A DNA stretch of 64,000 bases from assembly GCA_002269645.1 (NCBI GenBank), contig NIVC01002527.1, positions 1-64,000 of the forward strand, written 5' to 3'. Shown in pieces: positions 11,165 through 39,237 of the stretch. Source of the stretch: Macrostomum lignano (taxonomy: Eukaryota). Numbering within the stretch: position 1 is the stretch's first letter; every line of letters begins with the position of its first letter. The translations under genes were made by a program, and so were the position numbers. The notes under the pieces were generated by a model that was not told the DNA's origin, did not search any database, and worked only from the letters and a program-made list of their open reading frames with translations.

Positions 11165-11995
11165 ATGGAATCAAAGGAGCTGCTGCACATGGATCAGCAG
11201 CAGCAGGAGTCGCTGCTGTACTACGATATCCCGATCAGGGTCACCGGGACGGCTCTGTCCCTCCTCATCCTCTGCATCGGCTTTGTCGGCAACGTGCTGG
11301 TGATGGCGGTGGTGCTCACCGCCCGCGGCCGCATGATCACCACCACCAACTGCTACCTGGTGTCCCTGTCCCTTGCTGATCTGGTGGTTCTAATTGTTGG
11401 AGCCGTCACCATGGTAACGGAGCTGAACATCGTCCGGGACCGCTGGCTGCTCTGTGGCCTGGCCGGCTGCAAGCTGTCGGTCTACCTCACCTACGTGGGG
11501 GTGAACACCTCGGCCTTCTCCATCACGGCCTTCTCCTTGGAGCGCTGGGTGGCCATCTGCCATCCCATCACTGCGAAGACAGCCTGCACCGTCCGCCGCG
11601 CCTTCCGCATCATCGCTGGAATCTGGACATTCGGCCTGGCCTACAACGCGCCCTGGCTGTACCTGGCCACGGTCAGGCCGACCCGGCCGGGAAACGGCAG
11701 CCTGGAGGTGCCCAGCTGCCAGCACAAGCTGGCCAGGTCCGACCCCATCTACATGTCGCTGTACCTGGCCGACCTCAGCCTGTTCTATGTGGTGCCGCTG
11801 CTGCTTCTGTCTGGCGTGTACACCGCCATCGCCAGGGCTCTGTTCCGCTCGTCTGCCTCTAGGAGCAACGGCCGCGACGGAGTCGAGAGAAGAGGCGGCC
11901 GATGCTGCGGCAGCGACACCGGGAGCGGCATCGCCAGAATGACGGAGCCGCTGAGATCGTCGAATACCGCCAGGCTGCTGCAGAGTCGAATCCAG
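11165..11995 (+). CDS. TRHR: Thyrotropin-releasing hormone receptor-like class A GPCR, exon 1 of 3; join(11165..11995,13637..13868,14210..14373), 408 aa
   Basis: GN in TM1; TNCYLVSLSLADL; GCKLSVYLTYVGVNTSAFSITAFSLERWVAICHP; YLADLSLFYVVPLLL. All closely parallel TRHR. Donor CAG|GTTGGC, phase 0. Confidence 0.85.
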
Positions 11996-12023
11996 GTTGG
12001 CTGGCCTGGGGAATTGTCTTGAG

Positions 12024-18024: not shown

Positions 18025-18584
18025 AATCCTAGAGCTACGAGTATAAGGGATAGTTGAAGCCCTAATTGCGCCATCTCCAGGATTCTGACCGTCCTTATTA
18101 AAAAGGTTAACCTAAGATCATCAATCAATAATCATGAACAAGCCTATAATTAAGGAAGAGCTACGGCTTCCAATGGGCTAGGCATATCATTTTGATTCAG
18201 CATAGCGACATCGTCTGCCTTCAACATCAAATACAAGATGTCTTGTTAGACTGAGGCAGAGAGGCAACAGCAGCTGCAATCAACAGGACTTTAATACTCG
18301 TACCTGACAGAAAAGGGCTCCCAACTCGTCAAAAATACAGGAAGCAAAGTTTGCCTCTGAGAAAACGTAGCGCATCGTGAACGACACGCCTGACGAAAAA
18401 CTTTCATCAAATTATCTGCCAAGTTATCTAACTTTTATCAAAGTCTGGGACCGAGTTTTTATAAATGTCTTATTCTTAAGGAAAATGTTTTTTTTAAATG
18501 CAGCCCTTGAAACCGAGACCTTAATATGATATGATAATCATATTATATAATCCGGATATGATAATCCGGTGGCCCAGCACTTAA

Positions 18585-19997
18585 GGATCTGGGAGGCTGA
18601 CCAAGCAACTGAGGATCTGGGAGGCTGGCCCAGCAACTGAGGATCTGGGAGGCTGGCCCAGCAACTGGCACTCTGGGAGGCTGGCCCAGCAACTGAGGAT
18701 CTGGGAGGCTGGCCCAGCAACTGAGGATCTGGGAGGCTGGCCCAGCAACTGAGGATCTGGGAGGCTGGCCCAGCAACAGGATCTGGGAGGCTGGCCCAGC
18801 AACTGAGGATCTGGGAGGCTGGCCCAGCAACTGAGGATCTGGGAGGCTGGCCCAGCAACTGAGGATCTGGGAAGCTGGCACAGCAACTGGCACTCTGGGA
18901 GGCTGGCCCAGCAACTGAGGATCTGGGAGGCTGGCCCAGCAACTGACGCTCTGGGAGGCTGGCACAGCAACTGAGGATCTGGGAGGCTGGCCCAGCAACT
19001 GAGGATCTGGGAGGCTGGCCCAGCAACTGAGGATCTGGGAGGCTGGCCCAGCAACTGAGGATCTGGGAGGCTGGCCCAGCAACTGACACTCTGGGAGGCT
19101 GGCCCAGCAACAGGATCTGGGAGGCTGGCCCAGCAACTGAGGATCTGGGAGGCTGGCCCAGCAACTGAGGATCTGGGAGGCTGGCCCAGCAACAGAGGAT
19201 CTGGGAAGCTGGCACAGCAACTGGCACTCTGGGAGGCTGGCCCAGCAACTGAGGATCTGGGAGGCTGGCCCAGCAACTGAGGATCTGGGAGGCTGGCACA
19301 GCAACTGAGGATCTGGGAGGCTGGCCCAGCAACTGAGGATCTGGGAGGCTGGCCCAGCAACTGAGGATCTGGGAGACTGGCCCAGCAACTGAGGATCTGG
19401 GAGGCTGGCCCAGCAACTGAAGATCTGGGAGGCTGGCACAGCAACTGAGGATCTGGGAGGCTGGCCCAGCAACTGAGGATCTGGGAGGCTGGCCCAGCAA
19501 CTGAGGATCTGGGAGACTGGCACAGCAACTGAGGATCTGGGAGGCTGGCCCAGCAACTGAGGATCTGTGAGGCTGGCCCAGCAACTGAGGATCTGGGAGG
19601 CTGGCCTAGCAACTGAGGATCTGGGAGGCTGGCCCAGCAACTGAGGATCTGGGAGGCTGGCCCAGCAACTGAGGATCTGGGAGGCTGGCCCAGCAACTGA
19701 AGATCTGGGAGGCTGGCACAGCAACTGGCACTCTGGGAGGCTGGCCCAGCAACTGAGGATCTGGGAGGCTGGCCCAGCAACTGAGGATCTGGGAGGCTGG
19801 CCCAGCAACTGAGGATCTGGGAGGCTGGCCCAGCAACTGAGGATCTGGGAGGCTGGCACAGCAACTGAGGATCTGGGAGGCTGGCACAGCAACTGAGGAT
19901 CTGGGAGGCTGGCCCAGCAACTGAGGATCTGGGAGGCTGGCCCAGCAACTGAGGATCTGGGAGGCTGGCACAGCAACTGGGGATCTGGGAGGCTGGC
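18585..19997. repeat. 28-bp minisatellite (CTGAGGATCTGGGAGGCTGGCCCAGCAA)
   Basis: About 50 units; the minus strand is stop-free in all frames, giving the three long spurious ORFs. Confidence 0.97.
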
Positions 19998-20798
19998 CGC
20001 TCAGTCCGACTAAGAATAGACAATAATGCAGCCAACAGCTGAGCCAAGAAAGGCGAAGAATAAAATGCGATCTTCGAACTTCAACAGCACACGCTGTACA
20101 CCGGTGGTCAGACATCTCAAAAAAACCTCACGAGATTCCAGCGTCACTGTCAGAGATCATCACCTTATCTAATGCCTGACGTGTGCGTTTTAGCATTTCT
20201 GACGCGATGAAGCTCGAGTGACAGTCCGGGAGTTGCAATAGTGCAGATGTACTAATAAGCATATGGATAGGTTTCGCCAGCTGTCAGCAGACAACTTGAA
20301 TACAAATGAAAAAAAAGATAAGCCAGCACAGACGGAGACATCCAGCATATTTCGTGCACTGCTGATAAAGCTTAGATGATTAATTATTATTGTAAGAAAC
20401 ATTTGGCTCGCCTGAGCGAGTGAGAATCAGCAGCTCACTTCAGCGAGGCGGGCAATCACTCTGGATCAGTGCGGGTTTATTACGATCATATTAATAGTAC
20501 GGTGCTGGACAACAGAGGCAGTGAGAATGGTTAAAGCAGAAAACAGAGCCACAGTTCATAAATAACATAGCCGCACAGATTTTCATAAACAGCCGGCACA
20601 ACACTGAAGTTGACAACAGGAAGGAAGCAGGAAGCTGAGCAAACAGAGCGAAATGGTAAATTGTACTGCGGTAAACAAACTGCCGACTGCCGGGGATTAC
20701 AAAGCAACTGCTTAGGGAAAGAGGGGATGAGTCAGGGGATGAGTCAGGGGAGAGTCAGGGGATAAGTCAGGGGAGAGTCAGGAGATAAGTCAGGGGAG

Positions 20799-21653: not shown

Positions 21654-22450
21654 CAGGGGAGAGTCAGGGAGAGAAGAGTCAGGGGAGAGTAAGGGGAGAG
21701 TCAGGGGATAAGTCAGAGAGTCAGGGGAGAGTCAGGAGATAAGTCAGAGAGTCAGGGGATAAGTGAGGGGAGAGTCAGGGAGAGAAGAGTCAGGGGAGAG
21801 TAAGGGGAGAGTCAAGGGATAAGTCAGGGGAGAGTCAGGGGAGAGTCAGGGGATAAGTCAGAGAGTCAGGGGATAAGTGAGGGGAGAGTCAGAGGATAAG
21901 TCAGAGTCAGGGGATAGTCAGGAGATAAGTCAGGGGAGAGTCAGGGGAGAGTCAGGGGAGAGTCAGGGGGATAAGTCAGGGGAGAGGACAACACAAATCA
22001 GTCAGTCATAAAGCAGCCAGCACAGGGGATGATGCCCAAGTGACGCTTCGCAAATAAAACGGTTCAAAACTGCCTGAAATCCAGGAATCCAGCACCAGTG
22101 AAAAAGTTGCGCATACAAAAGCGTCGTGAAATTTCAAAATTTTAATAAATTGAAGTCAAGCTGATATTAAACAAATGCTTTGTAAATGTAAATCAATAAC
22201 AGTAGTAGAAAAGGTTAATTAACAAAAATACCTGACCTATAATATTATTATAACCGGGAGATAACTATAGATTATAAATGTAGAAAATTGGTTATTAAAG
22301 TACATAAAAATGCAAAGCGCCAAGTTAATAAAATCATTTTTAATGCATTGTAGTGCATGATAGTAAAGTTTTTTATTTATTAATTCTTTGGCTCTGCCCG
22401 CCAATCAGTGTGAAGTTCCCGCACACAGCCGCTGCTCTCGGTGAGACCAG

Positions 22451-23705
22451 CTAGCGACCCTGGCCGGTCACGGCGCCAGCATAAGAGCGGCCTGACGGAG
22501 CTCCGGCCTGCCGCTGCTGCTGCTGCTGCGGCGTCGGCAGCGACTTGGACGAAGCCGGCAGCGGTGGGGCGTCAGCAGCTCGATTGTTCACCGTCAGCGG
22601 CCGACGGTCAAGCAGGTTGCCAGAGGCGGACGCGGACTTTGTCGGGTCGGCCAGCTTGTTGGCGGCTACAGCGGCGAAAGTGGCGCGATTTGAAATTGCG
22701 CGCGCTTCCGAAGCTGAATTCTCCAACTCTGCAGCTTCAGGCTTCTTAACGACGGACTCGCCTGAATTAGCTTCAGGCTTCTTGGCGGCAGATTCACCTA
22801 AAGCTTCAGGCTTCTTGGCGGCGGATTCACCTAAAGCTTCAGGCTTCTTGGCGGCGGATTTGCCTGAAGCTTCAGGCTTCTTGGCGGCGGATTTGCCTGA
22901 AGCTTCAGGCTTCTTGGCGGCAGATTCACCTAAAGCTTCAGGCTTCTTAGCGGCGGATTCGCCTGAAGCTTCAGGCTTCTTAGCGGCAGATTCGCCTGAA
23001 GCTTCAGGCTTCTTAGCGGCAGATTCGTCTGAAGCTTCAGGCTTCTTAGCGGCAGATTCGCCTGAAGCTTCAGGCTTCTTAGCGGCAGATTCGCCTGAAG
23101 CTTCAGGCTTCTTAGCGGCGGATTCGTCTGAAGCTTCAGGCTTCTTGGCGGCGGATTCGTCTGAAGCTTCAGGCTTCTTGGCGGCGGCTTGAGGCTTTTT
23201 AGAAGCGCTTTTAGCTTTTTTCATAGATTTTTTCGAATTGTTGTCGCGTTTTGCCTTCGGCGCCTTCGTCTGAGCCGACGCTGGTCGTTCGGCAGACTTT
23301 GACGCCGCCGACCTGCCACGGCCGCTGCCGCCATTGCCGCTGCAACTGCGCGGCAGCCTCAGCAGAGGCCGCGGCGGGCGAGGAATCTGCCGCAGCATTG
23401 ACATCGGCTGCTGCTGCTGCTGCGGCCCGGGAGCCGTTGGGAACTTCGGCGACGAGGAGGCACGAAAACGCGGAACCTGCGGTCGCTGGCGGTACTGCTG
23501 ATGATGCGGATTCTGGAACTGATGCTGCTGCCGCTGCGGAGGCGACGACTTACTAGGAGCGGCAGCGTCGGCGCCGTTGGCGGAGGTCGCGACCAGTCGG
23601 CCGGCGAATTTCTCGTAGCCGGAGCGGCCGCGATTCTCCAGGGTGCGCTGGACTCGCTCGACCAGGCGCTGCATGGGCGGCACCAGCTGCTGCTCTTCCA
23701 GGCGC
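22451..23705 (-). CDS. TUT/Cid1-family nucleotidyltransferase-like protein, exon 4 of 4 (low-complexity tail with AAKKPEASGES repeats)
   Basis: Acceptor ctcctccgccag|G, phase 2, gives PAFK-RLEEQQ; open to the stop at 22451. Repeat units vary at synonymous sites (GCC/GCT, TCC/TCT) in this frame. Confidence 0.7.
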
Positions 23706-23758
23706 CTGGCGGAGGAGGGGAGAGCCAACGTTAAATGAATCGCCAACCAAGGCATAAA

Positions 23759-24393
23759 CTGTTACAGACAGGAAAACAGCAACTCATGAGGCTGTTACAG
23801 ACAAGATAACAGCAACTCAAGAGGTTGTTACAGACAGGATAACAGCAACTCAAGAGGCTGTTACAGACAGGATAACAGCAACTCAAGAGGCTGTTACAGA
23901 CAGACAGGATAACAGCAACTCAAGAGGCTGTTACAGACAAAATAACAGCAACTCAAGAGACTGGTACAGACAAAATAACAGCAACTCAAGAGACTGTTAC
24001 AGACAGGAAAACAGCAACTCAAGAGGCTGTTACAGACAAAATAACAGCAACTCAAGAGGCTGTTACAGACAGACAGGATAACAGCAACTCAAGAGGCTGT
24101 TACAGACAGACAGGATAACAGCAACTCAAGAGGCTGTTACAGACAGACAGGATAACAGCAACTCAAGAGGCTGTTACAGACAAAATAACAGCAACTCAAG
24201 AGGCTGTTACAGACAGACAGGATAACAGCAACTCAAGAGGCTGTTACAGACAGGAAAACAGCAACTCAAGAGGCTGTTACAGACAAAATAACAGCAACTC
24301 AAGAGACTGTTACAGACAGGAAAACAGCAACTCAAGAGGCTGTTACAGACAAAATAACAGCAACTCAAGAGACTGTTACAGACAGGAAAACAG
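23759..24393. repeat. 33/37-bp minisatellite (CTGTTACAGACAGGATAACAGCAACTCAAGAGG) filling intron 3 of the TUT-like gene
   Basis: Direct reading. Confidence 0.95.
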
Positions 24394-24404
24394 CAAGGGC
24401 TCAC

Positions 24405-24837
24405 TTGAAAGCGGGCAGCTGCTGCACCAATTTAGCCTTGCGCATCCCGTCCAGGTTGCGAGCGAAGCAGGCCGTGAACAAATCGTGGTCCTTGGCCAAG
24501 TTAAGCGCCGTCCGATAGAAGGGCTCCTCCGGTTCGGACACCCGTGAATAGGTTCGGCCAGCATTCTCTCCGGACACCGGACAGGGCAGGCTGACCCGGG
24601 CGCCGGGAAACGGATCCTCGCGGCCGCCCCGGTCCAGCAGGCGGCCGGTGAGGACGCAGACGGCGCTGGAGGCGAAGAAGCCGATGGTGGCGTACAGGCG
24701 GACCAGGCCGCAGAACTGCTCACCCAGCTGCTCTGTGCTCAGCGGCTCCGGCTGCCATTTGCGCAACGCCTCGGACACCTCGGATTTGCGATGGCCTCGG
24801 GCCAGGGCGCGAACTACGGACGGCGGTACCAGGCCGC
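24405..24837 (-). CDS. TUT-like gene exon 3 (PAP-associated domain region)
   Basis: Acceptor ctctgccgcag|GC, phase 1; LGEQFCGLVRLYATIGF...VCVLTG...ENAGR resembles the PAP-associated domain pattern (L..LL..FF.FYa..Df...iSir.G...NvaR); donor AA|GTGAGC. Confidence 0.75.
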
Positions 24838-24884
24838 CTGCGGCAGAGAGGACATGTGTTGATGTGAATAAACAAAGTGGCAGT

Positions 24885-25462
24885 GAGTCAGTGGGTCAAT
24901 AATTCAGTGGGTCAATAATTCAGTGGGTCAATGATTCAGTGGGTCAATGATTCAGTAGGTCAATGATTCAGTGGGTCAATTTTACAGTAGGTCAATGATT
25001 CAGTGGGTCAATTAGACAGTGGGTCGATGATTCAGTGGGTCAATGACTTAGTAGTGAGTCAATGATTCAATAGGTCAATGATTCAGTGGGTCAATTATAC
25101 AGTGGGCCGATGATTCAGTGGGTCAATGACTTAGTAGTGAGTCAATGATTCAATAGGTCAATGATTCAGTGGGTCAATTATACAGTGGGTCAAGAGTGGA
25201 TCAATGAATCAGTAGGTCAATGATTCAATAGGTCAATGATTCAATGGGTCAATGATTTGGTAGGTCAATGATTCAGTGGGTCAATTATACAGTGGGTCAA
25301 GAGTGGGTCAATTATAGTGGGTCAAGAGTTGGTCAATGAGTCAGTAGGTCAATGATTCAATAGGTCAATGATTCAGTGGGTCAATTAAAGTGGGTCAAGA
25401 GTGGGTCAATGAGTCAGTAGGTCAATGATTTATTAGGTCAATTATACAGTGGGTCAATGAGT
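24885..25462. repeat. About 16-bp minisatellite (GTCAATGATTCAGTGG) filling intron 2 of the TUT-like gene
   Basis: Direct reading. Confidence 0.93.
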
Positions 25463-25486
25463 GGGTTATCAAGGCCGCACACTCAC

Positions 25487-25895
25487 CCTGCTCCATGTGA
25501 AACAGCACCAGCAGGGCCACAGCGTAGCCGGTCAGCGCTCCCTTACGCCTAATAAGCTGCCTGGACAGCGCCCACTCTCTCGTTACAACGGTCAGCAGGC
25601 GAAAAGCTTCGCTGAGCGAGGCCAGGCCGTTTAACAGGGCCGCGGCTCGCCTATGCTGCTGGCCGCCTCTGCCCAGCCTGACGGAGCAGCGCAGGTCAGC
25701 CTGCCGGTACACGCAGGTGACCACCGACACCTGCCGGCTGTGCATCACCTGGACGCGGATGAATTCGCCTTCACGACGCTGCAGCAAGCCAAAGATTTGA
25801 TCCGCCCGCTCGCGGTCGCGGCTGGCCGCGTCGGCCTGCGGAGCGGCTTCCGCTGCGGTGGGCGCATTGGCACCCGTTGGATCGTCATCCGGGAT
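25487..25895 (-). CDS. TUT-like gene exon 2
   Basis: Acceptor ttcccccccgcag|ATC, phase 0. RQVSVVTCVYRQADLRCSVRL ... FRLLTVVTREWA ... GALTGYAVALLVLFHMEQ aligns with TUT4/7 AKVPIVKF...GDISL...LGYTMKVFAK...GSLSSYAYILMVLYFLQ. Donor G|GTGAGT. Confidence 0.85.
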
Positions 25896-25959
25896 CTGCG
25901 GGGGGGAAGAGGGGGAGCGGAGCATTGAGTTTGGTAGCTGGTTCGTCTGTGCGGGACCT

Positions 25960-26272
25960 GTGAGGCTGAACTTGAGGATCTGTGAGGCTGAACTTGAGGA
26001 TCTGGGAGGCTGAACTTGAGGATCTGGGAGACTGAACTTGAGGATCTGGGAGACTGAACTTGAGGATCTGGGAGGCTGAACTTGAGGATCTGGGAGGCTG
26101 AACTTGAGGATCTGGGAGGCTGAACTTGAGGATCTGGGAGGCTGAACTTGAGGATCTGGGTGGCTGAACTTGAGGATCTGGGAGCCTGGTGGCGACTCAG
26201 CAACTGAGGATCCGGGAGGCTGGCCCAGCAACTGAGGATCTGGGAGGCTGGCCCAGCAACTAGGGATCTGGG
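25960..26272. repeat. 22-bp minisatellite (CTGAACTTGAGGATCTGGGAGG) plus 28-bp units of the 18585-19997 family, in TUT-like intron 1
   Basis: Shared core GAGGATCTGGGAGGCTG; GGCTGGCCCAGCAACT units at about 26215-26262. Confidence 0.93.
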
Positions 26273-26351
26273 AGATAACATCCCAAATAAACATGCTTAA
26301 AAGTGCGACACCGCGTGCAAGAACTCGCAAAGCTAAGGACAGAAGCCTCAC

Positions 26352-26573
26352 CTCAATGGAGAGATCCACACTGGAATTCTTGGAGGCGATGCCGCTGGCC
26401 GAGGAGCCGACCAGGTGCACCGTGGCCTTGGGCAGGGTCTCCGACACCAGCTCGGTGAGTCGGTCGATGGCCAGCTGTCGCTGGGCGGCCTCCTCAGCCG
26501 ACAGCAGAATGCAGTTATAAAACGCCTGCAGCTGCTCGCCCAGGCTGCGGTTTGACATGTACTCAGTGCTCAT
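26352..26573 (-). CDS. TUT/Cid1-family (pol-beta NTase fold) protein, exon 1 of 4; complement(join(22451..23705,24405..24837,25487..25895,26352..26573)), 772 aa; predicted catalytically inactive
   Basis: LSAEEAAQRQLAIDRLTELVSETLPKATVHLVGSSASGIASKNSSVDLSI matches the ncPAP/TUT helix plus GSS motif. Donor GAG|GTGAGG. All four exons splice in frame (2319 nt). Confidence 0.82.
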
Positions 26574-26751
26574 GGCTGGTGGGCTGCGAGGCTTTCTTAG
26601 AAAATGAGGAAGGAGAAAACATACTGATTTTTAAATGGGAGCACTTCTTCTAGTCTAAGTTCCTAATATTCTCTCTATTCACTATTGTTAAAAGGCAAAG
26701 CTTCTTAAATCCACAAATTCTTTTAATTGCACTATTAAGAGAATTATGCCT

Positions 26752-26974
26752 ACAGCAATTCTTAGAAACACACAGCTTCAACCACAGCAATTCTTAGAAA
26801 CACACAGCTTCCCCTATTGCAATTCTTAGAAACACACAGCTTCCCCTATTGCAATTCTTAGAAACACACAGCTTCAACCACAGCAATTCTTAGAAACACA
26901 CAGCTTCCCCTATTGCAATTCTTAGAACACACAACTTCCCCTATTGCAATTCTTAGAAACACACAGCTTCCCCT
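26752..26974. repeat. 32-bp minisatellite (GCAATTCTTAGAAACACACAGCTTCCCCTATT)
   Basis: About 7 units upstream of the TUT-like gene. Confidence 0.9.
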
Positions 26975-27584
26975 AAGTTGCTATTGCTAAGTTGCATTAG
27001 TTATTACAAAAATGTTTTGAAATAAGGACACGAAGCGAGAGGCACCGCATCAATCCAAAAGGAGCAAACTGTTAAAGGAAGCGACTCTTAACTATCGATT
27101 CTGAACTGGTGTACTTGCCATTTAAAATTACTAAGTTAGTCATAAATTAGCAACCAAAAAAATCATTCAACCGCAAATATCAATCTAACATTCACGGGAT
27201 TTTAGCGATCACAATAAATTTTTCCTCGAATACATGGCACAAGTAATCCACGTCGCTTCTAAAAGCAACAAGATTACTGTTGCGAAAATTGATTGAATAC
27301 GTTTAAGCAGTTTACAGTTACACAATTCTGTTTATTTATTTTTTCATTCTGTGTCAGAAGCCCACGAAGAGACAAAGGCTTCACCGCTGCAAAGCTGTTT
27401 GTTTGAGTCCCATTTAAACAAAAAACTTTCTATAGTAGGATTTGAAAAGCCTAATAACAACACGACGGACTCTCAATTAGAGGGCATTAGCACAGTTGAC
27501 TCGAGTGAGCTGATGCTGGTAGAAAAAGAATGGTCCAATTAGCGATTTGACTGTCTTAGAATTACCGTAAAGTCTTTATATAGG

Positions 27585-28014: not shown

Positions 28015-28278
28015 TTATTTCCCAACGTCTTCTTTCAGCGTGACAGTTCGATTAAAGATAAGCCGGCCAGGCGGGCTGGAGTCCTGATCCAGATAAAAAT
28101 AGCCCAGCCGTTCGAACTGCAGGCGGCGCTGAATGGCGGCAGCAGTCAGCAGGTAGCGATCGGCCAGGGCGCCGGGCTTCACCGCCAGAGAGTTCGGATT
28201 CATGGCCGCTATGAGGCCGTCGGGATGCTCCTCGGGGTTCTTCATGGTGAACAGCTGCTCGTATAAGCGGACCTCCAC
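28015..28278 (-). CDS. QARS1: Glutaminyl-tRNA synthetase exon 6 of 6
   Basis: Acceptor tatccaatccag|GTG; VEVRLYEQLF...LQFERLGYFYLDQDS...LIFNRTVTLKED. Confidence 0.95.
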   Translation of the reverse strand: MEVRLYEQLFTMKNPEEHPDGLIAAMNPNSLAVKPGALADRYLLTAAAIQRRLQFERLGYFYLDQDSSPPGRLIFNRTVTLKEDVGK

Positions 28279-28540
28279 CTGGATTGGATATTGTGTGACA
28301 GACAGAGTCGTTGCAGGTAACCCAGGTAAAAAAGAAAAGAAGTGACTCTGGACGACTCTAAAACACGACGCGATGTCACGGTACAAGTCGCCAAAAAGTA
28401 GCCTAAGAGTCAATTTGAAGCCTTTTATTGTCTGTGACTATGAAACGACTCTTGGGCCGTAAATTTGCACTTTAAAGCCCACAGCAGACATTTATTTCAA
28501 TCTTTTCTTGCCGCAAGAAAGGGGGTTGTTCTTTCTTCAG

Positions 28541-28830
28541 AGTTGTTAGCCTAGTGGTTGGAGCGTCGGGCTCATGACTTGAAGGTTGGGGGTTCGATTC
28601 CCGATCCCACTGGAACAGTTTGTGTCCTTGAGCAAGACACTCAACTCTGCATTGCTTCAGTTCACGCAGCTGTAAAATGGGTGCCAGCATTAGCTGGGGT
28701 AATTGAGGGTGAGTGTGGCCGTATGCAGCTTTAAAGATGCGCCGCGCAATAGCTGCGGCTGAGCCTTCGGTTGCACAACTGGCCCAATTGGGACAGGGTG
28801 TTAAAAATTGTTATTATTATTATCATTATA
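28541..28830 (+). mobile_element. tRNA(Met-like)-derived SINE with a CORE/Meta-type central domain and (ATT)n tail, in QARS1 intron 5
   Basis: TAGCCTAGTGG A-box; GGGCTCATGAC anticodon-like arm; GGTTCGATTCCC B-box; GTGTCCTTGAGCAAGACACT...CAGCTGTAAAATGGG; tail ttattattattatcatt. Confidence 0.75.
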
Positions 28831-28939
28831 TTGGACCAACACTACGAAAATAGTTTTCACTTTCTTTGCTTGCTACTAAATAAGTAGCAAGCGGATTTTA
28901 TCATCTTTATTCGCAATTAGGCCCGATTCCCGCTCTCAC

Positions 28940-29653
28940 CTGCACAGGATCCGCCACCCAATGCACAAAGCATTTCGGCTTGGCCGGCAGGCTGTCCAAC
29001 GGCAGACAGGCCACTCGGAGCTCGGACACCTGTCCGGCAGCGTTCCGGACAACCTGACGCACAGCGATGGCCACATTGGCGTGCTTCAGGCCGACTGGCT
29101 GGTCCTCGGTGAGCCGTTTGAACCCGGCGCCAGCGCCCGCCTTGCCGCCGTCGCGAAAATCTTCTCTCTCCAAGTAGAGCACGCCGGATGAGGCGGAGAA
29201 GCTGGCAATGGAATGCGAGCCCCGCTCCGGACTGGCCGGATAGTCTGGCACCGTCAGGGCGGCCGATTTGACGGCGTCCAGGCCTTCAACTATGGTGACC
29301 TTCAGCGGATCGAGTACAACCATGGTGCGCGGCGCCGATGTGTTAAGGATCTCTCTGGTGCAGGCGTCAAGGAGGCTGGGATCGATGTAGGCCGATGCCA
29401 TGGTGACGCCAACCTTGGCGGCGAATAGGTTCACAGCTTCTGGCGGGACACCGCGGCGGCGCAGCGCTGTGAGGGTGAACAGCCTGGGATCGTCCCAGTC
29501 AGCTACAGCTTTCTTCTGCACCAGGTTGAGAATCTTCCGCTTGGACATGACCGTGTTGCAGACGTTGAGCCGGCCGTACTCCCATTGCACCGGGCAGTAC
29601 AGGTCCAGCGCGTTGCACAGCCAGTAATAGGAGGACCGGCGGTTCTGGAACTC
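28940..29653 (-). CDS. QARS1: QARS1 exon 5
   Basis: EFQNRRSSYYWLCNAL...QWEYGRLN..VMSKRKI (KMSKS-equivalent)...WDDPRLFTLTALRRRG; phase 0 to 0. Confidence 0.97.
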
Positions 29654-29749
29654 CTGCGATTGTTGTTCACAGATGGGGGATGAGATTTGCTTGCGCGGTT
29701 GCTATGCGGTTTATAATAAGATAACTGCAGCCAGATGAGGGATCATTGA

Positions 29750-29910
29750 GGGAGGCGTCAGACAGCTGAAGGATCATGGAGGGGACACTAGGACATGAAT
29801 AAGTATGGAGGGGGACATTAGACACATGAAGGATCATGGAGGGGGCATCAGACACATGAAGGATCATGGAGGGGGCATCAGACACCTGAAGGATCATGGA
29901 GGGGACATCA
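29750..29910. repeat. 30-bp minisatellite (AGACACATGAAGGATCATGGAGGGGGCATC) in QARS1 intron 4
   Basis: Direct reading, about 5 units. Confidence 0.85.
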
Positions 29911-29966
29911 AACAGGGAGCAATAGCATGGAGGGGGCAATAGCCCCAAACGCCCCTAAAGGCTCAC

Positions 29967-30347
29967 CTTGGTGCACAGAGAGTGAGTAATGTTCTCAATG
30001 GAGTCGCACAAGCAGTGGGTGTAGTCATAGGTGGGATAGATGCACCACTTGCTGCCAGTCCGGTGGTGCCGGGCATATTTGATCCTGTAAGCCACGGGAT
30101 CCTGCTTGGAGTCCTCCATAGTGAGCCGCATTCTCAGGCAGGCCTCGCCCTCCGCGTACATGCCGGCCCGCATCGCCCTGAACAGCTGCAGCGACTCCTC
30201 GGCTGGCCGATCTCGCCAAGGCGACGGCGGCGGGTTGTGGCCCTTCAGCTGGTCTGGCGACTGATGGCACACGTAGGCCTTGCCGCGCATGATGAGGCTC
30301 TCAGCCCACTCGTACAGCTGGTCGAAGTTGTCCGACGCGTACGTCAC
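29967..30347 (-). CDS. QARS1: QARS1 exon 4
   Basis: [12 protein letters not shown]...GKAYVCHQ...SPWRDRP...DPVAYRIK...[27 protein letters not shown]. Confidence 0.97.
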
Positions 30348-30384
30348 CTGGTTGATGGAAGGGATGTGCGGGCTTGGAGTTAGG

Positions 30385-30545
30385 CGTTGGAGTGACGAGA
30401 GCAGTGAATTTGGTGACCCCAGAGTGACGAGAGCAGTGAATTTGGTGACCCCAGAGTGACGAGAACAGAGAATTTGGTGAACCGGAGTGACCAGAAAAGT
30501 TTAAATCGGCGTCGGAGTGACGAGAACAGTGAATTAGGGATCGGA
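30385..30545. repeat. 32-bp minisatellite (GAGTGACGAGAGCAGTGAATTTGGTGACCCCA) in QARS1 intron 3
   Basis: Direct reading, about 5 units. Confidence 0.85.
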
Positions 30546-30589
30546 GTGACAAGACAGTAGTCACAACTGGCTAATAAAGTTCCACCAAC

Positions 30590-30680
30590 CTTATAAGGCG
30601 TGTAGCCGAGCCACTCCACTATGTCACGAATGGCTACAAAGAATTTCTCCTCCTCTTTCTCCGGATTCGTGTCGTCATAT
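30590..30680 (-). CDS. QARS1: QARS1 exon 3 (91 nt, only partly in the ORF track)
   Basis: aaaatttcag|A TAT GAC GAC ACG AAT CCG = (R)[30 protein letters not shown]|gttggt. Confidence 0.95.
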
Positions 30681-30704
30681 CTGAAATTTTAACAAAGCGA
30701 GGGG

Positions 30705-31218
30705 ATTCTGGATAGGGTTCAGGGCGATTTTGGATAGGGTTCAGGGCGATTTTGGATAGGGTTCAGGACGACTCTGGATAGGGTTCAGGGCGATTCTGGA
30801 TAGGGTTCAGGGCGATTCTGGATAGGGTTCAGGGCAATTCTGGATAGTGTTCAGGGGCGATTATGGATAGGGTTCAGGGTGATTCTGGATAGGGTTCAGG
30901 TCGAATCTTGATAGGGTTCAGGAGCGATTATGGATAGGGTTCAGGGGCGATTATGGATAGGGTTCAGGGCGATTATGGATAGTGATCGGGGCAATTTTGG
31001 ATAGGGTTCAGGGGCGATTCTGGATAGGGTTCAGGGTGATTCTGGATAGGGTTCAGGGGCGATTCTGGATAGGGTTCAGGGCGATTCTGGATAGGGTTCA
31101 GGGCGACTCTGGATAGGGTTCAGGGTGATTCTGGATAGGGTTCAGGGGCGATTCTGGATAGGGTTCAGGGCGATTCTGGATAGGGTTCAGGGGCGATTAT
31201 GAGTAGGGTTTAGGGGCT
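30705..31218. repeat. 22-bp minisatellite (TTCTGGATAGGGTTCAGGGCGA) filling QARS1 intron 2
   Basis: Direct reading. Confidence 0.95.
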
Positions 31219-31235
31219 TCTAGCAATCAGCGCAC

Positions 31236-31694
31236 CTGAGATAGCAGTGCCCGTTGTGAGCTCGCGCGTAGCCGAAGTTAAAATTGATGGCTTTAGCGTG
31301 CCCGATATGGAGAATTCCGTTGGGCTCGGGAGGGAATCTCGTGAATACCTTGCCACCAGTCTGCTCGAGGTGCCGCCCGAGCAGAAATCGAGTCCGCGGC
31401 GTCATCACGTAGCCGTCAGTAAGGTAATTTTCGCCCGGCTTGTGAAATTTGGCCGCGTCGCCGCTGATCATCTGGTCGGCCAGGGAGCGGGTCTCTTCGC
31501 GGAAGACCTCCGCGTTCCCGTTGGCGGCGGCTGCGACTGCCGCTGGCTTGCCTCTGGCAGCTGGTTGCTTAGCAACTAAAGAGGCGTTGGCGGCGCCGGT
31601 TCGGTCAGCGTCGGTCTTGGGGCCCAGCAAGTGAAGGATTTGCACCTCGAATTCGCATTTCACCTGCTTGCCGTCGGCCCATTTCAGGTTGGAT
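31236..31694 (-). CDS. QARS1: QARS1 exon 2
   Basis: [12 protein letters not shown]...HLLGPK...FHKPGENY...[26 protein letters not shown] (HIGH motif); phase 2 to 2. Confidence 0.97.
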
Positions 31695-31759
31695 CTTTGA
31701 TAGCGGGGTAAAGGTGGGTAGGATTGCGTGGGACAGGATTGGCTTTAAACATTTCTTGG

Positions 31760-32360
31760 CTAGATATCCTACTAGATCTGAGCTAGATAACCTACTAGAT
31801 CTCAGCTAGATATCCAACTAGATCTCAGCTAGATAACCTACTAGATCTCAGCTAGATATCCAACTAGATCTCAGCTAGATATCCAACTAGATCTCAGCTA
31901 GATATCCAACTAGATCTGAGATAGATATCCAACTAGATCTGAGATAGATATCCAACTAGATCTCAGCTAGATATCCAACTAGATCTCAGCTAGATATCCA
32001 ACTAGATCTCAGCTAGATTTCCAACTAGATCTGAGATAGATATCTTACAAGATCTGAGATAGATATCTAACTAGATCTCAGCTAGATATCCAACTAGATC
32101 TGAGATAGATATCCAACTAGATCTGAGATAGATATCCAACTAGATCTGAGATAGATATCCAACTAGATCTGAGATAGATATCCAACTAGATCTCAGCTAG
32201 ATATCCAACTAGATCTGAGATAGATATCCAACTAGATCTCAGCTAGATATCCAACTAGATCTGAGATAGATATCCAACTAGATCTGAGATAGATATCCAA
32301 CTAGATCTGAGATAGATATCCAACTAGATCTGAGATAGATATACAACTAGATCTGAACTA
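31760..32360. repeat. 23-bp minisatellite (CTAGATCTCAGCTAGATATCCAA) filling QARS1 intron 1
   Basis: Direct reading. Confidence 0.95.
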
Positions 32361-32422
32361 GGTAATTAGACACAAGCACTAACTACGCCAAGACCCCCCA
32401 GAGAAGCTGTATGGACACAAAC

Positions 32423-32877
32423 CTGGCCTCTCCGAGAAGCTTATTTATTCCAAACGCATAACGCTGTGCCAGCAGCTCCTGCTTATGCTTATTAATCACT
32501 TCTTCTACCGCCCGTTCGATATCTTCGGGAGTGATTGACACTCCGATGCCGCAGGCGGCTTTGAAGGCGTCCAAGTCGCCGCTGCCGATTTGCTTGAGGC
32601 AGAAATCGCAGGCGGCTGTTACCTGGGCCTCCGTGGCCAGATCGCCGTTAATAATGTGGTTGACAATCAGTTCATGACCGGCAAATGCCTGCTTTTTCAG
32701 CTTAGTGCCAGTGTGGTAAATCAAATTTCCCTGCACTTTACTCAACTCCTTGGAGCCCAGCTTGTCCTTGGCGCAGCGGACCAAAGCCACTAAGCGCTCG
32801 GTGAGGTCTTTGTTTCGCATTGTTTCTTCAATCTTAGGCCCAGATAGGCCTAGACTGGCCAGACATTCATTTGCCAT
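32423..32877 (-). CDS. QARS1: Glutaminyl-tRNA synthetase exon 1 of 6; complement(join(28015..28278,28940..29653,29967..30347,30590..30680,31236..31694,32423..32877)), 787 aa
   Basis: Eukaryote-specific N-terminal domain (LGLSGPKIEETMRN...ACGIGVSITPEDIERAV...QRY); donor AG|GTTTGT; total 2364 nt in frame. Confidence 0.95.
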
Positions 32878-33149
32878 GCTTGTTGAAGTGCTCTGCGAAA
32901 ATAATAAGCAGATTTTTATAGTTATACATAAATAATTCAGTACATGGCTGCGGGCCACATGAGAAAGGAATTAAGGCGATAAAATAGATGAGAGATAACA
33001 GAGAGGAGAGGCGAGAGATAGGATCAGAGAAGAGATGAGAGCAGATAGGAGAAAAGAGATGAGAGAGGAGAGGAAAGAAGAGGGAGGGGAGAGAGAAAAG
33101 GGGTGAGGAGAGGGAATCATCTACTGCTTGTTTGCAGGGTTGCATACAA

Positions 33150-36100
33150 TAGGTGTTACTATGAAAGACTATAGCAAGGTTTGATCAAACAGTTTGCTTG
33201 TTTTGCATAAAAATGTTTGTCTATAAGCTTTTGGATACTGTCTGGCTTGTATACATAGTCTAAGTTTTTATTTAGTGGATTGAATCATTGCTAGAAAACT
33301 TGTACTATATATATTTAAGCCTCAATGACTCAATGTCTAATTGAAAAAAGGTTGACAAAAAAAGTAAAGGCTAAATTAAATTATATTAATAGCAAGTCAT
33401 TATCATACATTAGTTAACTATATAGTTATACAATTTAAATTAAGTCTTGTGGTAACTCCTACACTGTTTTCAACACTGATACAATTCAAGTCAGTGTCAA
33501 AATTTAGCTAGTATACAGTCAAAAGCCTTGTATAATGCAATTTTTATCAGAATAAGAATTCAGCCAGTCAGTTTTTTCTCTAGCTTTCTTACAATGCATT
33601 TAAAGTTGAAAAGTCTACTTGACCTTTGTAAAAAGCATGTTTTTTATATTCAATCCCTTTTAACATTGAACAACTTTTTAGCCAAGACACATTTAACACC
33701 AGGGAAAGATTTCTAATTGAATGGTGCAAATTTGAAGAAGATTGGTTGAGTTTTTTTAATTGATCACATACTGACAACATATTTTTAGAATATAAGAAGG
33801 AAAAAGGAAAAAAGGATAATATCTATTATATACCAATTAATTAATAAGTAATTTTTAAGTAATCTAGAAAAAATATATCAAGATGCCTAACATACCAAAT
33901 TATTTTAATATTTTAAACTTAACCCAAAATGTTTATTAGCCAATGGCATATGAGTTTAGACAATGCTATAAGGTCTTACAACTATAATGCATATATACAA
34001 TTATGAAGCTATTAGTATAATATAAGGCTTATTAACATGTCCTTATAACTTATACTATATATATTTGTATATATAGTATAAGTTATTATAGTATATATAC
34101 AATATATAGTATATATAGTATATATAGTATATATAGTATATATAGTATATTATTATAACAAGAACTTAATTTGATACTTATAAAAAATCTTATTCTTAAA
34201 TTATTATATTAAAATTATAAAATTGAATATATAGTTATATTTATAAAAACTATAATCACAAACTTGAATTTATACTAGAAGGCTACTAGTCACTTTGGCA
34301 ATAAGGCATATGATATTAGTAAGACATTTTGGTAAAAAAATTAAAATATTTGAATAAATTGCTAGATGTTTGAATTTTACAAAATAAAGATAAAGCTAAG
34401 GATATTGCTTGATAACAATGGAAAGACTTTTTATGCTTTGAATAGAAAGAGTTATTAATTTTAATTTTTTTGTATTAAAATACAAATACAAGGGGTGTCC
34501 CAAAAGTTCCCTGAATGTCTAACGTAGCTCTTCAACAGAGCCATGAAATTTCATGCCCCTGGTGTCAAATGAAAGAAAAATTTGTCACAAAGAAAACAAA
34601 GTTAAAATCATGTTGATATCTTTTTTACTCAGGAGCTGCAGCAAGAAACATGTGCAAAGGTCAGGGGTAGTGTTACACAATCTCACATATCAATGAAAAT
34701 ATAATTTTTCATCTCCATTTTTAGATATTTTCATTTTGTATTCGTGCTATTGACATGTCAGAAAGACATGGTAGTGTCTATGGAAAAAAGCAGAAATGCT
34801 CATAAAGCTAATCTGAGCTTTTGTGCAAGTGCAAATAATTTGTACCAAGCACTTGCTTTCAACTTGGAATTTCTTTGCAAAAATGAGTTCTTTTCAGAGC
34901 CTTGAAAGTTAGCAAAGTCAAGTTTTTGCTCTTTGGTCAGTAGGATAGAGTGGAGCCAAGATTTCTACCACTTATTCTCCATCCACAGTGAGAACAGCCT
35001 AAAAAACTGCCATTCACAGATGGATTGAACACTTTAGAGATGGCCAGTCTGCTGTGAATGATCAGCCATACTCTGGCCATTCTTGCACGTTGGGTGGCAA
35101 GATATCCCATCAATGGATTGAGGCCCTGCTAGACTTGGATGCCCACTTGACTATTTGAGAGATCTCTGATTAATTGGATATTGCCAAGTCAAGTTGAGGA
35201 TTCATCAATGGTATGAACTGTTCTGTGTTTTATTGTTTAAAATCATTGCCATAGATTTTTGAGATTGTGTAACACTACCTAACCTTTGCGCATGTTTCTT
35301 GCTACAGCTCCTGAATAAAAAAGATATCAACATGATTTTAACTTGTTTTCTTTGTGACAAAATTTCCTTTCATTTGACCCATGGGCATAAAATTTTATGG
35401 CTCTGTTGAAGAGCTACGTTTGACATTCCAGGAACTTTTGGGACACCCCTCATATGTTCATTTTTCAAGTGTATTTTAGGAATCTATCTTTACTAGGTTA
35501 ACTTGCTAATAGACACTTTGTCTCTAGATGCATATGAGATATACTGACAAAGTTAACAATTAGTAACTCTAATTATGGACAAGCATTCAAGCAAGCATAC
35601 AAACCTTAGAGATTTAGTATATTTAGATAGTAACTCTAATTTAATGCCTGTACCTTGTTGCTTAAAGCAAATAAAAGTTATTTCAATCAACTTTGCCTTG
35701 TTAAAGCTCTAAAATATAAATGTCAATATAAGATAATACTTGTTATACTTTTAAAAATTATCTTTGTAACCAATATATAGTTGATCTTACTAGTTAAAGT
35801 AAAAATATAGATCTCATTTATTAAATTAAAATCTAATTTTATTTATACATTTATGTTGTAGACTTTTTGCCTAAACGTCTTTCTTTTGTTGCTAAAGAAA
35901 TAGGGTTATTACCTTATGGTTAGAGCATTAGACTTATGACTGAAAGTTTAGAAATTTAATTCCCTTTTGTAGCCAATGACCATTATCAGATAATGTCTAG
36001 CACAGATTGGTCTCTAGCAATGAATATAGTCAGGTGTGCTGGTATAGTCTAGCAAAAAGGAAAAGGGGGTATCCCACAACAGCATAGTTTAGAACTTGGC

Positions 36101-38830
36101 TGCAATAGGTTTGATTCTTAATCTTATTTTTTGTCCTTAAGTAGGACACTTAACTTTGCTTGCTCCAGTTCACCTAGCTATACCAATATTAGCTAAGATA
36201 AGTAAAAGTGTATATGTCAAGCCCTTAATCCTTGGACTGAACAGCCATGTGCAACCTTTAGATATACTATAGAATAGCTATGGCTAAGCTGTCAATTGCA
36301 TAATTGTCCATTAGGGCCTATGCAATCAATTATTTTTATTATTTTTATTGTAAATAGCTTGCAAATGCCAGTATGGCAACTACTAGAACCTATCAACAAA
36401 AATGTTTATTACTTGCCCCTAATTTTTACTATAGAATATCTGTTGCTAAGTCTTATTGTTGGCTTCTAGTGAATTTGATAACAGGCTATTTTGGCAATAG
36501 CCAATTTGGCAAATGCTTAAGTTAAAAGAAAGCTGACACTTTTATTAAAATTCAACATATTGTCATTAGACATTAGTCCTTGCCATTGAAATTAAGGTAA
36601 TTTAGATGTAGTCATATTAAATAATACATTTTCAAAATGATGTCTATAAAAGCTATACTATGCCTCTTTAGAGTATTTAACTAATAGCTAAATTAACAAC
36701 TTATACATAAAACATTAGTAGAAGCTTAGACTTATACTAAATTTATAAGGGCTTATATAGACTTATACTAAAAATCAAAGTTTTTTAAAATAAATTTAAC
36801 TAGGGTGTCCAGTGAGCCTATTTTTAGCAAGTGCAAAAAACGTGAAAAAGTGGTCTTTTTTAGATGGCTATAACTTTTTAAATATTTCAGATATGGCAAC
36901 ATTCTTATATTTGTTGAAAAGTAGACAAACAGATCTTTCAAATGATATATAGTTTGCATGTTTACTACATACAATTACAAGATACAGATTGTCAAACATT
37001 GCATACATCTTCGAAACTGTGCCAATTTTGCTTGAAAATATGGGGTAGGGAGAATTCATTTTTTAGTAAATAAGTGCATAACTGCTAAGAATGCTTGCAT
37101 ATTGGTTGTAGGTAACTTCCTGCAGGTCATTTTAAATGAATTTTTTTTGTTCAAAAATATTTATATGTACATGTAAAATTTAAAATGGCCATAACTTTTA
37201 AATGGAAAGAGTGGCCACCCTAATTCTTTTTGCTACTTACTTCGAGTGACAAAACGAAACTTTTAAGCAAGACAGGATGAGTGTAACTCCTGTCACAGTA
37301 TGCCTAATAGAGATTGCCAAAATGCATGCAAATCCCTGAGACAAATTCTTAAAGAAATTTTTTAAGCTCAAAAGAATGGCCAGTTAGTTTCTTCAATAAA
37401 ATGATAGCAAAACAGGCCAAGCTCTTAGCTCTTTGTCCTAAAGGCACATCCTGATAACTTTTGCTGCACCAAAGTTATTAAGCATATTTGGCACAGCTGT
37501 ACATGCAAATACACTATGGAGATAGGAAAAATGTACATTGAGGGGCTGTATGCTCTACAAATCAGTTACACATCCAATTTTTTCCAAAAAAGGAAAGCTC
37601 TTTCAATAGACACAATTTTAGCCTATTGAACTCTAATTGCACTCTAACTAGCCTACTGAGTTAGTAGAAAGTTAAGCATCAGCACAACAATTCTTAGACA
37701 ACTTTTTCATCAAGAGTTAAAGAGTTGTTTGGAACAACTTTTTAGTGACTTTTATCACATTATCATTTTTAACAGGTTAAGATTTACATGAGCTACATAG
37801 ATTTATAGACACAATTGACATCTAGAATGGTACTTTGGAAGACTCATTTTCATGTAAATAATGGTCAAATCATTTGCATACTACTTACAGTAAGAAGTCA
37901 AGAATCTTACTAATTATTGTATACAAGTATTACTTTGATATGAAAGTAATAAAAATAAGGTAACTGGAAAGTATACTATGACAAAGCCAAAGAATGATAC
38001 TCCTGCAATTTTTTCTACACCTCTTTTGTCTTAATCCCCAGATCTAGAGATATAGAATAGTATATATATACACAAGATCATAAAAAATTGTGGTAACAAA
38101 AATCTATAAAATAACACCTCAAACACTAAAATCTTCATGAAATAAAAAAGTTACAGACATTTTACTGTTACAGACATGCTTTTTGCCCAAAAATGGCAAA
38201 GTTTTTAGTGTATTTGAGATAGGGAAAAAAACACAAAACTTTTAAAACAAAAAACTTAATAACTTTTTTATTACTTGATCAATTTTCAAATTTTCTGTTA
38301 TGTATGCGGCTTGTATGCTGGTTAGGGTTCTTGCATTCTGATTGGCTGGGAGGTTTGTCTGTCTGCCCAGACTGGCCTAGGCCAGGTAGGGAGTTTAATG
38401 TTTGCTAAATTATGCTAGTTAGTAGTTAACTATAATATAAGTGTGCACTGGCCTTTCAAAAGCCTTTGTGACTTTTTCTACCTTGCAATCGCTTCTTACA
38501 TCTTATTCATTTGGCCACGCTGCCTCAAAGTACAACAATTTCACTTATAACACTCAGAGCTACAGTATGACAATTAAAATTTTAGATTTCAAAAAAAATT
38601 TTCTCATTGGACCCCCTATTAACTATTATAGGGGCCTATTGTATGCACATATATATTAGCAGTAGCAATAGCTAAGCAGTGTTCTTTTGTCATTGCAACA
38701 TTGACAGTTTTTTTCTATTTCATTTTATACTTGCATTTGATGATTGCACTGCTTGCACTTCTAGTCAAATAAAGCAACAGACTTAAGGTAGGTATTTAAA
38801 AGTATTTTGAAGATATCTTTATAGACTATA
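33150..38830. other. AT-rich, CpG-poor block of decayed transposon-derived sequence
   Basis: About 13 CG dinucleotides in about 5.7 kb by eye (none seen in 33181-34500); TA-rich; contains recognisable TE relics. Confidence 0.8.
34489..35452 (+). mobile_element. Decayed mariner-type element (964 bp) with about 195-bp TIRs, TA target duplication and a transposase HTH relic
   Basis: TA|CAAGGGGTGTCCCAAAAGTTCC ... GGAACTTTTGGGACACCCCTCA|TA; arms 34489-34684 and 35261-35452. 35009-35083 translates AIHRWIEHFRDGQSAVNDQPYSGHS (mariner consensus-like RW..RF..G..S..D.PRSGRP). Confidence 0.88.
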
Positions 38831-38838
38831 GTCTAGAT

Positions 38839-39237
38839 CAGGGGTCCCCAACCTGTGGCCCATGGCTGCATATGGCCCGCAAGCCCTTTTTGTGGCCTGC
38901 AGCACCTTCCAGTAGTTTGCATTACATGCGGCCCACTAAGTCTATCACTGGATTTCATTGCAGCCCCCGAAAATGTTAAAATTTTCCTAGCTGTATTGAA
39001 AATATTCCCAGAAATTTCTTACCCTCTCCACTGCTAGAAGCAAAGCTTCAATTCATTTGGATTGCTATTTTAGCCACTCCTAGTGCACAAATGTACATGC
39101 AGTCAAGAGTTGAAGTGAAAAGTAGGAAGGAATGCTAGCTTTGCTTGGCTTTGCATATTTTATATTAGCATGCAGCCCGCACACCCTAAGCCAGTTGTCA
39201 ATATGGCCTACCACCCATAGAAGGTTGGGGACCCCTG
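38839..39237. mobile_element. hAT-Charlie-type MITE (399 bp)
   Basis: TIRs CAGGGGTCCCCAACCT / AGGTTGGGGACCCCTG; perfect 8-bp TSD gtctagat (NTCTAGAN Charlie preference); GGCCC/GCCCGC subterminal words. Confidence 0.92.

Follow-up and report, generated by a model that had tools for sequence, protein, structure and literature searches.

A stand-alone Cid1/TENT-type gene of Macrostomum lignano without two of the three catalytic aspartates, a candidate pseudoenzyme

The active enzyme GLD-2, which RNA-binding partners recruit, has all three acidic residues of its D-x-D...D triad. The reuse of dead RNA-tailing enzyme copies for binding is known, with the N-terminal domain of TUT4 and TUT7 as the clearest example. 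The three residues in question are D412, N414 and R468 in the N-terminal nucleotidyltransferase domain (NTD1) of TUT4, against D1058, D1060 and D1119 in TUT7; NTD1 lacks activity and functions in binding instead (PMC6488673). In MUT-2, a double mutant in which catalytic Asp residues were changed to Ala lost all tailing activity (bioRxiv 10.1101/422972).

Here we describe a gene of the flatworm Macrostomum lignano located on the minus strand at positions 22451-26573 of a 64,000-nucleotide stretch (the opening 64 kb of contig NIVC01002527.1, assembly GCA_002269645.1; hereafter the window). Its four GT-AG exons join into 2319 nt, corresponding to 772 codons plus TAG with 0 internal stops, and its product, the window protein, resembles the Cid1/TENT enzymes. 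We compared it with a second genomic copy and with a single divergent homologue, here called P0004. Our analysis suggests that the window protein is an expressed, selectively maintained, stand-alone paralogue of these enzymes that has lost nucleotidyl-transfer chemistry and acts by binding, that is, a pseudoenzyme. We consider this reading on balance probable. The loss of catalysis, which is the better supported part of it, is weighed below on its own.

Degeneration of the catalytic site on a Cid1/TENT fold

The window protein contains VHLVGSSASGIASKNSSVDLSIEI and QADLRCSVRLGRGG, and the motif GSSASGIASKNSSVDL is present. It was aligned with phmmer to 59 homologues, of which 52 segments cover all three catalytic columns, and a MAFFT alignment was used as a second view. 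The columns read D,D,D in 37 of these 52 segments and S,D,S in the window protein, and both alignments agree on this point. An initial annotation of the window had proposed that D-x-D became S-x-D, that the third Asp became Ser, and that the YN/NN after the third-Asp strand was lost, and all three proposals were borne out. The first position is S68 (AGT) and is followed by D70 (GAT), while the third is S145 (TCC), a residue that HMMER places on the Asp of TUT4 GLEGDISL. The N(N) after this strand is gone in the MAFFT alignment, as is the downstream N-T. The third-Asp strand can be shifted by two residues, bringing R143 to the catalytic position, and neither register supplies an acidic residue.

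The degeneration extends to residues that contact the nucleoside triphosphate (NTP) and the primer. The Lys of WAK is replaced by Leu (L184), N-T by R-R, SSY by TGY, and DPF by CPV, in which Asp gives way to Cys. The active relatives in the match set display D,D,D and mostly keep K..WAK, SSY and DPF, unlike the window protein. Other elements of the site persist: R180 stands for the first Lys of K..WAK, a conservative change, and G56-S57 is invariant in a 29-sequence alignment. Based on this pattern of substitutions, we consider the window protein very probably catalytically inactive.

The missing aspartates might be an artefact of assembly or sequencing error, of a wrong exon chain, or of an unseen exon that carries the catalytic strand. 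The region is repeat-rich and difficult to assemble, its introns are dense minisatellites, and the GenBank model of the gene is six tail repeats off from the genomic open reading frame (ORF). Against this stands the second copy of the gene, on NIVC01000267.1 (PAA86740.1; P0065, locus L003), in which exon lengths, splice sites and the AGT, GAT and TCC codons are identical. In addition, the transcript-derived proteins share the exon junctions, P0004 is colinear across them, and the introns hold only short-period repeats. A hidden exon was rejected on the last two grounds. The artefact explanation is already refuted by the second copy, and we leave it hardly any probability at all.

The family assignment is well founded. 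The MTPAP-like central palm profile of Pfam (PF22600) matched the protein at 45.5 bits, against a cut-off of 27 (E 1.1e-11), while the TUTase profile (PF19088) remained just under its cut-off (23.4 against 25.8 bits) and NTP_transf_2 (PF01909) was weaker than PF22600. These were the only three Pfam matches up to E 1; the DZF (NF45/NF90) and Mab21/MiD51 profiles gave no match, and PF03828 was not detected in the 772 residues. The same scan of 772 residues found no zinc finger, RRM or second nucleotidyltransferase domain, in line with the stand-alone character assigned to the protein at the outset, and the gene and the window each hold a single nucleotidyltransferase-like region. Sequence searches against the PDB matched TUT4/7, TUT1/Star-PAP, GLD-2, URT1 and Cid1.

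Structure prediction pointed in the same direction. A single-sequence AlphaFold2 model was unusable (predicted local distance difference test, pLDDT, 38) and was replaced by a run with the 29-sequence alignment, which reached pLDDT 82.9 and a predicted template modelling score (pTM) of 0.81. Foldseek against the PDB returned GLD-2 first (E 4e-16), followed by TUT1, Cid1, TUT7, CutA, MEAT1, MTPAP and URT1, with E-values to 4e-12 and some 350 columns aligned in each case, and all 50 matches listed were Cid1/TENT-type enzymes. The alignments to GLD-2, TUT1 and Cid1 span about 345-365 columns and thus both lobes. Furthermore, a subfamily profile built from the window protein and P0004 aligns through the GLD-2 recognition loop, in line with a C-terminal PAP-associated lobe that forms the cleft together with the palm. 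According to the model, the two-lobed palm and fingers fold is retained, as expected from the TUT/Cid1 fold that the initial annotation had assigned.

Selection, expression and a divergent homologue

The two genomic copies differ at 8 of 2316 coding nucleotides, of which 7 are synonymous and 1 is non-synonymous (D79N). By the Nei-Gojobori method, the proportion of synonymous differences (pS) is 0.0117 and that of non-synonymous differences (pN) is 0.0006, a ratio of 0.05, and the neutral chance of at most one non-synonymous change among eight is P = 4.7e-4 (binomial). Meanwhile, the flanking non-coding DNA of the copies shows about 2% divergence plus indels, and intron lengths are 456, 649 and 699 nt in this copy against 745, 703 and 802 nt in the other. 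The coding 33-bp repeat is intact and of the same length in the second copy. The ORF is held by purifying selection; the counts are small and the copies young, and the direction is clear. Because the second copy shares the Ser codons and the ratio of non-synonymous to synonymous rates (dN/dS) is about 0.05, far from 1, neither misassembly nor decay of a pseudogene accounts for the gene, and the intact state of the ORF noted at the outset holds in both copies.

The gene is already present in GenBank. The hypothetical protein BOX15_Mlig004094g4 of M. lignano (PAA57122.1, P0001; NIVC01002527.1 22451-26582, GCA_002269645.1) matches the window protein with 100% identity and is shorter than the genomic ORF by six of the 11-residue tail repeats, a deficit that probably reflects repeat collapse in transcript assembly or a spurious intron. 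Both PAA57122.1 and PAA86740.1 carry all three junction peptides (SIE/IPDD, MEQG/GLV and AFK/RLEE). The Mlig_3_7 annotation drew on RNA-seq (StringTie/TACO), on evidence from trans-splicing and poly(A) sites and on a transcriptome assembled de novo (PMC5730564). Since deposited models from this transcript-derived annotation share all three junctions, the gene is transcribed and its exon chain is transcript-supported, in agreement with the four in-frame exons and intact 772-residue ORF first proposed for it from GT-AG boundaries. As for the class of expression (neoblast, germline, position), the M. lignano paper supplements searched held no entry for Mlig004094.g4 or Mlig028901.g2, an absence that is uninformative.

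Three UniRef entries, A0A1I8JR07 (P0003), A0A1I8F3Y2 (P0066) and A0A1I8I3K.. (P0002), are older models of the same gene. At 56-81% identity they were considered as paralogues, and this was rejected, as they are fragmentary or frameshifted. They sit under unrelated cluster names (ELM2, DUF4149 and Pex2_Pex12 domain-containing), which is misleading for name-based annotation.

When 1.84 billion representative proteins were scanned in full with HMMER, 63 matches passed the cut-off of E <= 1e-3, among which, past the M. lignano models, only P0004 is close (866 residues, 37% identity to the window protein, E 2e-53). Apart from the gene's own, a single 50%-identity cluster reached E < 1e-10, and the remaining matches, at E >= 1e-9, are ordinary TENT enzymes. 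A word-indexed homologue search with the two-sequence alignment found nothing beyond fragmentary M. lignano models, and one with P0004, which is evidently absent from that index, gave no match. P0004 is encoded on a 2.76-kb contig from RNA-seq run SRR26183987; as this contig is intronless, derives from RNA-seq and ends in adapter sequence, it represents an expressed mRNA. Like the window protein, P0004 joins a nucleotidyltransferase-like module to a long, repetitive tail rich in K. Unlike it, P0004 has the D-x-D pair and the Asp of its DPF-like DPV motif, and its tail sequence is unrelated in detail. Its catalytic columns read D,D,T, so that the third Asp is lost, and the WAK Lys is Leu as in the window protein. 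The loss looks old and seems to have come in steps: the third Asp and the Lys of WAK would have gone before the two lineages parted, and on the M. lignano side the first Asp and the Asp of DPF would have followed afterwards. Inactivity in the small lineage formed by the two proteins is probably of long standing.

The two proteins align colinearly over all exon junctions, with gaps only in variable loops. Identity is 25-36% in the palm, 53% in the C-lobe helices around REWAL...LIRRKGALTGY, and 55% in the recognition-loop region PV(S/T)GxNAGRxYSRxSxPEEPF...TACF. This uneven conservation, which peaks in the C-lobe and is lower in the palm, leads us to place the function on the cleft side of the C-lobe.

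This homologue also bears on whether the gene could be a young pseudogene, a duplicated TENT gene in decay whose ORF survives by chance. The loss of catalytic residues, the very narrow distribution and the repetitive tail with its variable copy number would fit such a relic. They have to be set against the 772-codon ORF intact in two copies, the 7 to 1 ratio of synonymous to non-synonymous changes, the canonical splice sites in both copies and the transcript-derived annotation. Moreover, an expressed homologue at 37% identity shares the LIRRKGALTGY and NAGRxYSRxSxPEEPF blocks, which points to long-term constraint after the loss of the third Asp. The pseudogene explanation is already largely refuted and appears very improbable.

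An enzyme that is still active with a non-canonical site would be a further alternative. It would tail RNAs by means of D70 together with a displaced D141 or E74, or through Ser-assisted metal binding. The GS motif, D70, R180, T196 and Y198 (the triphosphate and base-stacking region) are kept, D141 is conserved in P0004, and the cleft architecture is predicted to be intact. Nevertheless, only one of the three metal ligands is acidic in either genomic copy; the WAK Lys and the DPF Asp have been replaced too, as has the N-T motif, and D141 and E74 lie four residues along the strands from the canonical positions. TUT4 NTD1, without two carboxylates, is inactive (PMC6488673), two-Asp mutants of MUT-2 are dead (bioRxiv 10.1101/422972), and the palm is the part least conserved with P0004. 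We therefore regard continued activity as improbable, if somewhat less so than decay to a pseudogene.

Placement in the family and proposed role

The profile and fold scores leave the window protein between GLD-2-like and TUT4/7-NTD1-like sequences. GLD-2/TENT2 comes first both by structure (6lbj/6lbk, E 4e-16, template modelling score 0.79 when normalised to the target) and among the PDB matches of the two-sequence subfamily profile (E 1.6e-17, over both lobes), with the TUT7 N-terminal domain practically equal (66.8 bits for GLD-2 against 63.3 for the TUT7 NTD1 region). The two proteins share LVGS and a similar recognition loop (EEPFDGTNTAR in GLD-2, CPVSGENAGR in the window protein), and both are minimal, consisting of the catalytic module only, without a recognisable RNA-binding domain. 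They differ in that identity over the Foldseek alignment is only about 18%, and in that the window protein is without two carboxylates and several NTP contacts. Cid1, TUT1 (Star-PAP), URT1 and MTPAP belong to the same superfamily with the same domain order, at Foldseek E-values of 1e-13 to 4e-12.

TUT4/7 NTD1 and the window protein are both nucleotidyltransferase domains without two of the three carboxylates, and in NTD1 the domain is used for binding and not for catalysis. The losses are not the same: the first and third carboxylates are missing in the window protein (S/D/S), whereas the second and third are missing in TUT4 NTD1 (D/N/R). In TUT4/7 a C2H2 zinc finger stands before NTD1, and an active catalytic module and zinc (CCHC) knuckles come after it on the same chain. 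The window protein is a separate polypeptide that has none of these and carries a basic repetitive tail instead.

It is conceivable that the gene descends from the dead NTD1, part of the Lin28-interacting module (LIM), of a TUT4/7-type enzyme that turned into a separate gene, so that its inactivity was inherited and did not evolve independently. The N-terminal half of TUT4/7 is indeed the best single-sequence PDB match, and an NTD1 profile of 13 TUT4/7 segments scores 87 bits for the window protein and 93 for P0004, against 42 and 57 bits for a catalytic-domain profile of the same 13 proteins. However, P0004 keeps D-x-D, while the TUT4/7 NTD1s in the match set are D-x-N or otherwise have no intact DxD. 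GLD-2 equals or beats TUT7 NTD1 by subfamily profile and is the top structural match, and the C2H2 zinc finger is absent. The best pairwise domain E-values of the window protein are to single-domain TENTs, whose profile set was picked by similarity to the query and is hence biased. Relaxation of catalytic motifs that is shared by dead domains can also inflate the likeness between them. We consider such descent quite unlikely, although less so than continued activity.

We return to the reading of a stand-alone pseudoenzyme. The window protein would work through binding rather than catalysis. On its conserved cleft face, the C-lobe would bind a protein partner, a nucleotide or the 3′ end of an RNA. 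The tail is long, basic (isoelectric point, pI, about 10), repetitive and probably disordered, and it would contribute multivalency or a non-specific affinity for RNA. The protein would then be an adaptor or regulator of RNA 3′-end metabolism, comparable to the dead NTD1 of TUT4/7 as a binding module. We put forward such a role, the binding of RNA or of a partner in RNA 3′-end metabolism, tentatively, as a possibility that falls somewhat short of even chances. A small-RNA, germline or TUTase-partner pathway is speculation.

Several points weigh against this interpretation. Inactivity is deduced from sequence, and the residues still in place (D70, the GS motif, R180, T196 and Y198) may leave residual nucleotide binding or unusual chemistry. 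D141 or E74 may reach the active site, given that substitute acids were checked by sequence alignment only. The AlphaFold alignment is made of active TENTs, so that the model leans to that fold. The selection test comprises 8 substitutions between two recent duplicates, and gene conversion could blur its result. Lastly, the putative binding role, whether of RNA or of a partner, is drawn from anatomy only.

A bolder version of the proposal is that the window protein and P0004 form a small lineage, confined to flatworms, whose dead GLD-2/TENT-like members are dedicated non-catalytic regulators of RNA tailing. The conserved cleft of the C-lobe would serve to read RNA 3′ ends or to cap them, or else to sequester proteins that partner an active TENT, and the RG-containing basic repeat tail would drive association with RNA or granules, possibly in the germline or neoblasts. 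If true, the TUT4/7 LIM, which acts in cis, would have in this lineage a counterpart that acts in trans. We judge this version unlikely as a whole.

The initial annotation ranked the gene as the best candidate for an undescribed component in the window. This was overstated, considering that the gene is in GenBank as a hypothetical protein and that dead nucleotidyltransferase domains are known in the family. No long-standing question is opened, and specialists will be surprised to a limited degree: the only firm property of this narrowly distributed gene is that its product is, judging by its residues, almost certainly unable to catalyse nucleotide transfer. Still, a stand-alone dead copy that selection maintains in a regenerative flatworm amenable to transgenesis and RNA interference would be a convenient test case. 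Such a module could show on its own the binding of RNA 3′ ends, competition with active tailing enzymes, or their recruitment.

Gene layout, C-terminal tail and neighbouring features

The coordinates of the gene and its signals are listed in Table 1. A shift of a single base at the exon-2 donor breaks the reading frame. In addition to the palm, exon 2 encodes the first C-lobe helices (TREWALSR, GALTGY), and exon 3 holds the block best conserved with P0004, PVSGENAGRTYSRVSEPEEPF...TACF. Each of the three introns is nearly all minisatellite, with a different one in each, and more arrays flank the gene at 21654-22001 and 26755-26975.

Table 1 Features of the candidate pseudo-nucleotidyltransferase gene (positions in the window)
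Feature	Position	Strand	Remarks
AG after pyrimidine tract (ttttctaAG)	26596..26597	-	22 nt upstream of ATG; 5′ end of PAA86740.1 model
Exon 1	26352..26573	-	Codons 1-74; ATG 26573-26571; N-terminal helices; GS motif; degenerate DxD strand NSSVDL
GS motif G56 S57	26408-26403	-	Within exon 1
Codon 68, AGT = Ser	26370..26372	-	First catalytic Asp position; same in second copy
Codon 70, GAT = Asp	26364..26366	-	Sole retained carboxylate of triad
Intron 1	25896..26351	-	GT..AG; nearly all minisatellite: 22-bp x 11 + 28-bp unit
Exon 2	25487..25895	-	Codons 75-211; Ala/Asp-rich variable loop; palm beta-sheet with degenerate third-Asp strand DLRCSVRL
Codon 145, TCC = Ser	25683..25685	-	Third catalytic Asp position
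Intron 2	24838..25486	-	Nearly all 16-bp minisatellite, ~37 copies
Exon 3	24405..24837	-	Codons 211/212-355; remaining C-lobe (PAP-associated-like "fingers")
Intron 3	23706..24404	-	Nearly all 33-bp minisatellite, ~19 copies
Exon 4	22451..23705	-	Codons 356-772 + TAG 22453-22451; low-confidence helices, then basic low-complexity tail
In-frame 33-bp coding tandem repeat	22729..23187	-	Tandem Repeats Finder, 13.8 copies; 13 units AAKKPEASGES
AATAAA polyadenylation signal	22376..22381	-	69 nt past stop codon

Spliced-leader trans-splicing is common in M. lignano. The AG that precedes the ATG coincides with the 5′ end of the PAA86740.1 model, which suggests that it is a putative spliced-leader trans-splice acceptor. 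The mRNA model of PAA57122.1 begins 12 nt downstream of the PAA86740.1 start, inside the same 22 nt.

The tail (residues 397-772) has no Pfam match and consists to 72% of A, S, K, P, E and Q. It runs from a Q/P/R-rich linker with GSGRGRS through the repeat block to a C-terminus ending in ...RSYAGAVTGQGR, and it is probably disordered. The tails of the window protein (pI 10.2) and of P0004 (pI 9.9, K/V/S-rich) are both basic and of low complexity, with internal repeats. Near the C-terminus, both display two copies of the pattern [S/T]-x(0-2)-[F/Y/W]-x-x-V, namely ATFAAVAA and RSYAGAVTG in the window protein (about residues 712-720 and 760-768) and SPGWTPVIK and SPVWMEVKK in P0004. This may be a short linear motif that both have conserved, or a coincidence.

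Some 1.4 kb upstream, also on the minus strand and at approximately 28015-32889, is a glutaminyl-tRNA synthetase gene (tRNA_synt_1c_R1/R2, with catalytic and anticodon-binding domains), which neighbours both copies. As the locus names (.g4,.g2) hint, the pseudo-nucleotidyltransferase gene may sit in a multi-gene transcriptional unit.

Elsewhere in the window, the plus-strand ORF at 11165-12022 encodes a rhodopsin-family seven-transmembrane receptor domain (7tm_1, E 2e-37), and that at 4089-5024, also on the plus strand, matches the ODAD1 central coiled coil (E 8e-9). Both are probably exons of neighbouring genes. Three overlapping long ORFs (<=488 residues) occupy a GC-rich repetitive stretch of the minus strand at 18538-20115. 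Their Pfam matches are only sub-threshold or low-complexity (DUF4081, GBP repeat), and the stretch may be either an exon rich in repeats or repeat DNA that does not code for protein. Positions 33001-41000 form a long AT-rich block, with a GC content of 0.27-0.38 against 0.5-0.63 in the genic parts.

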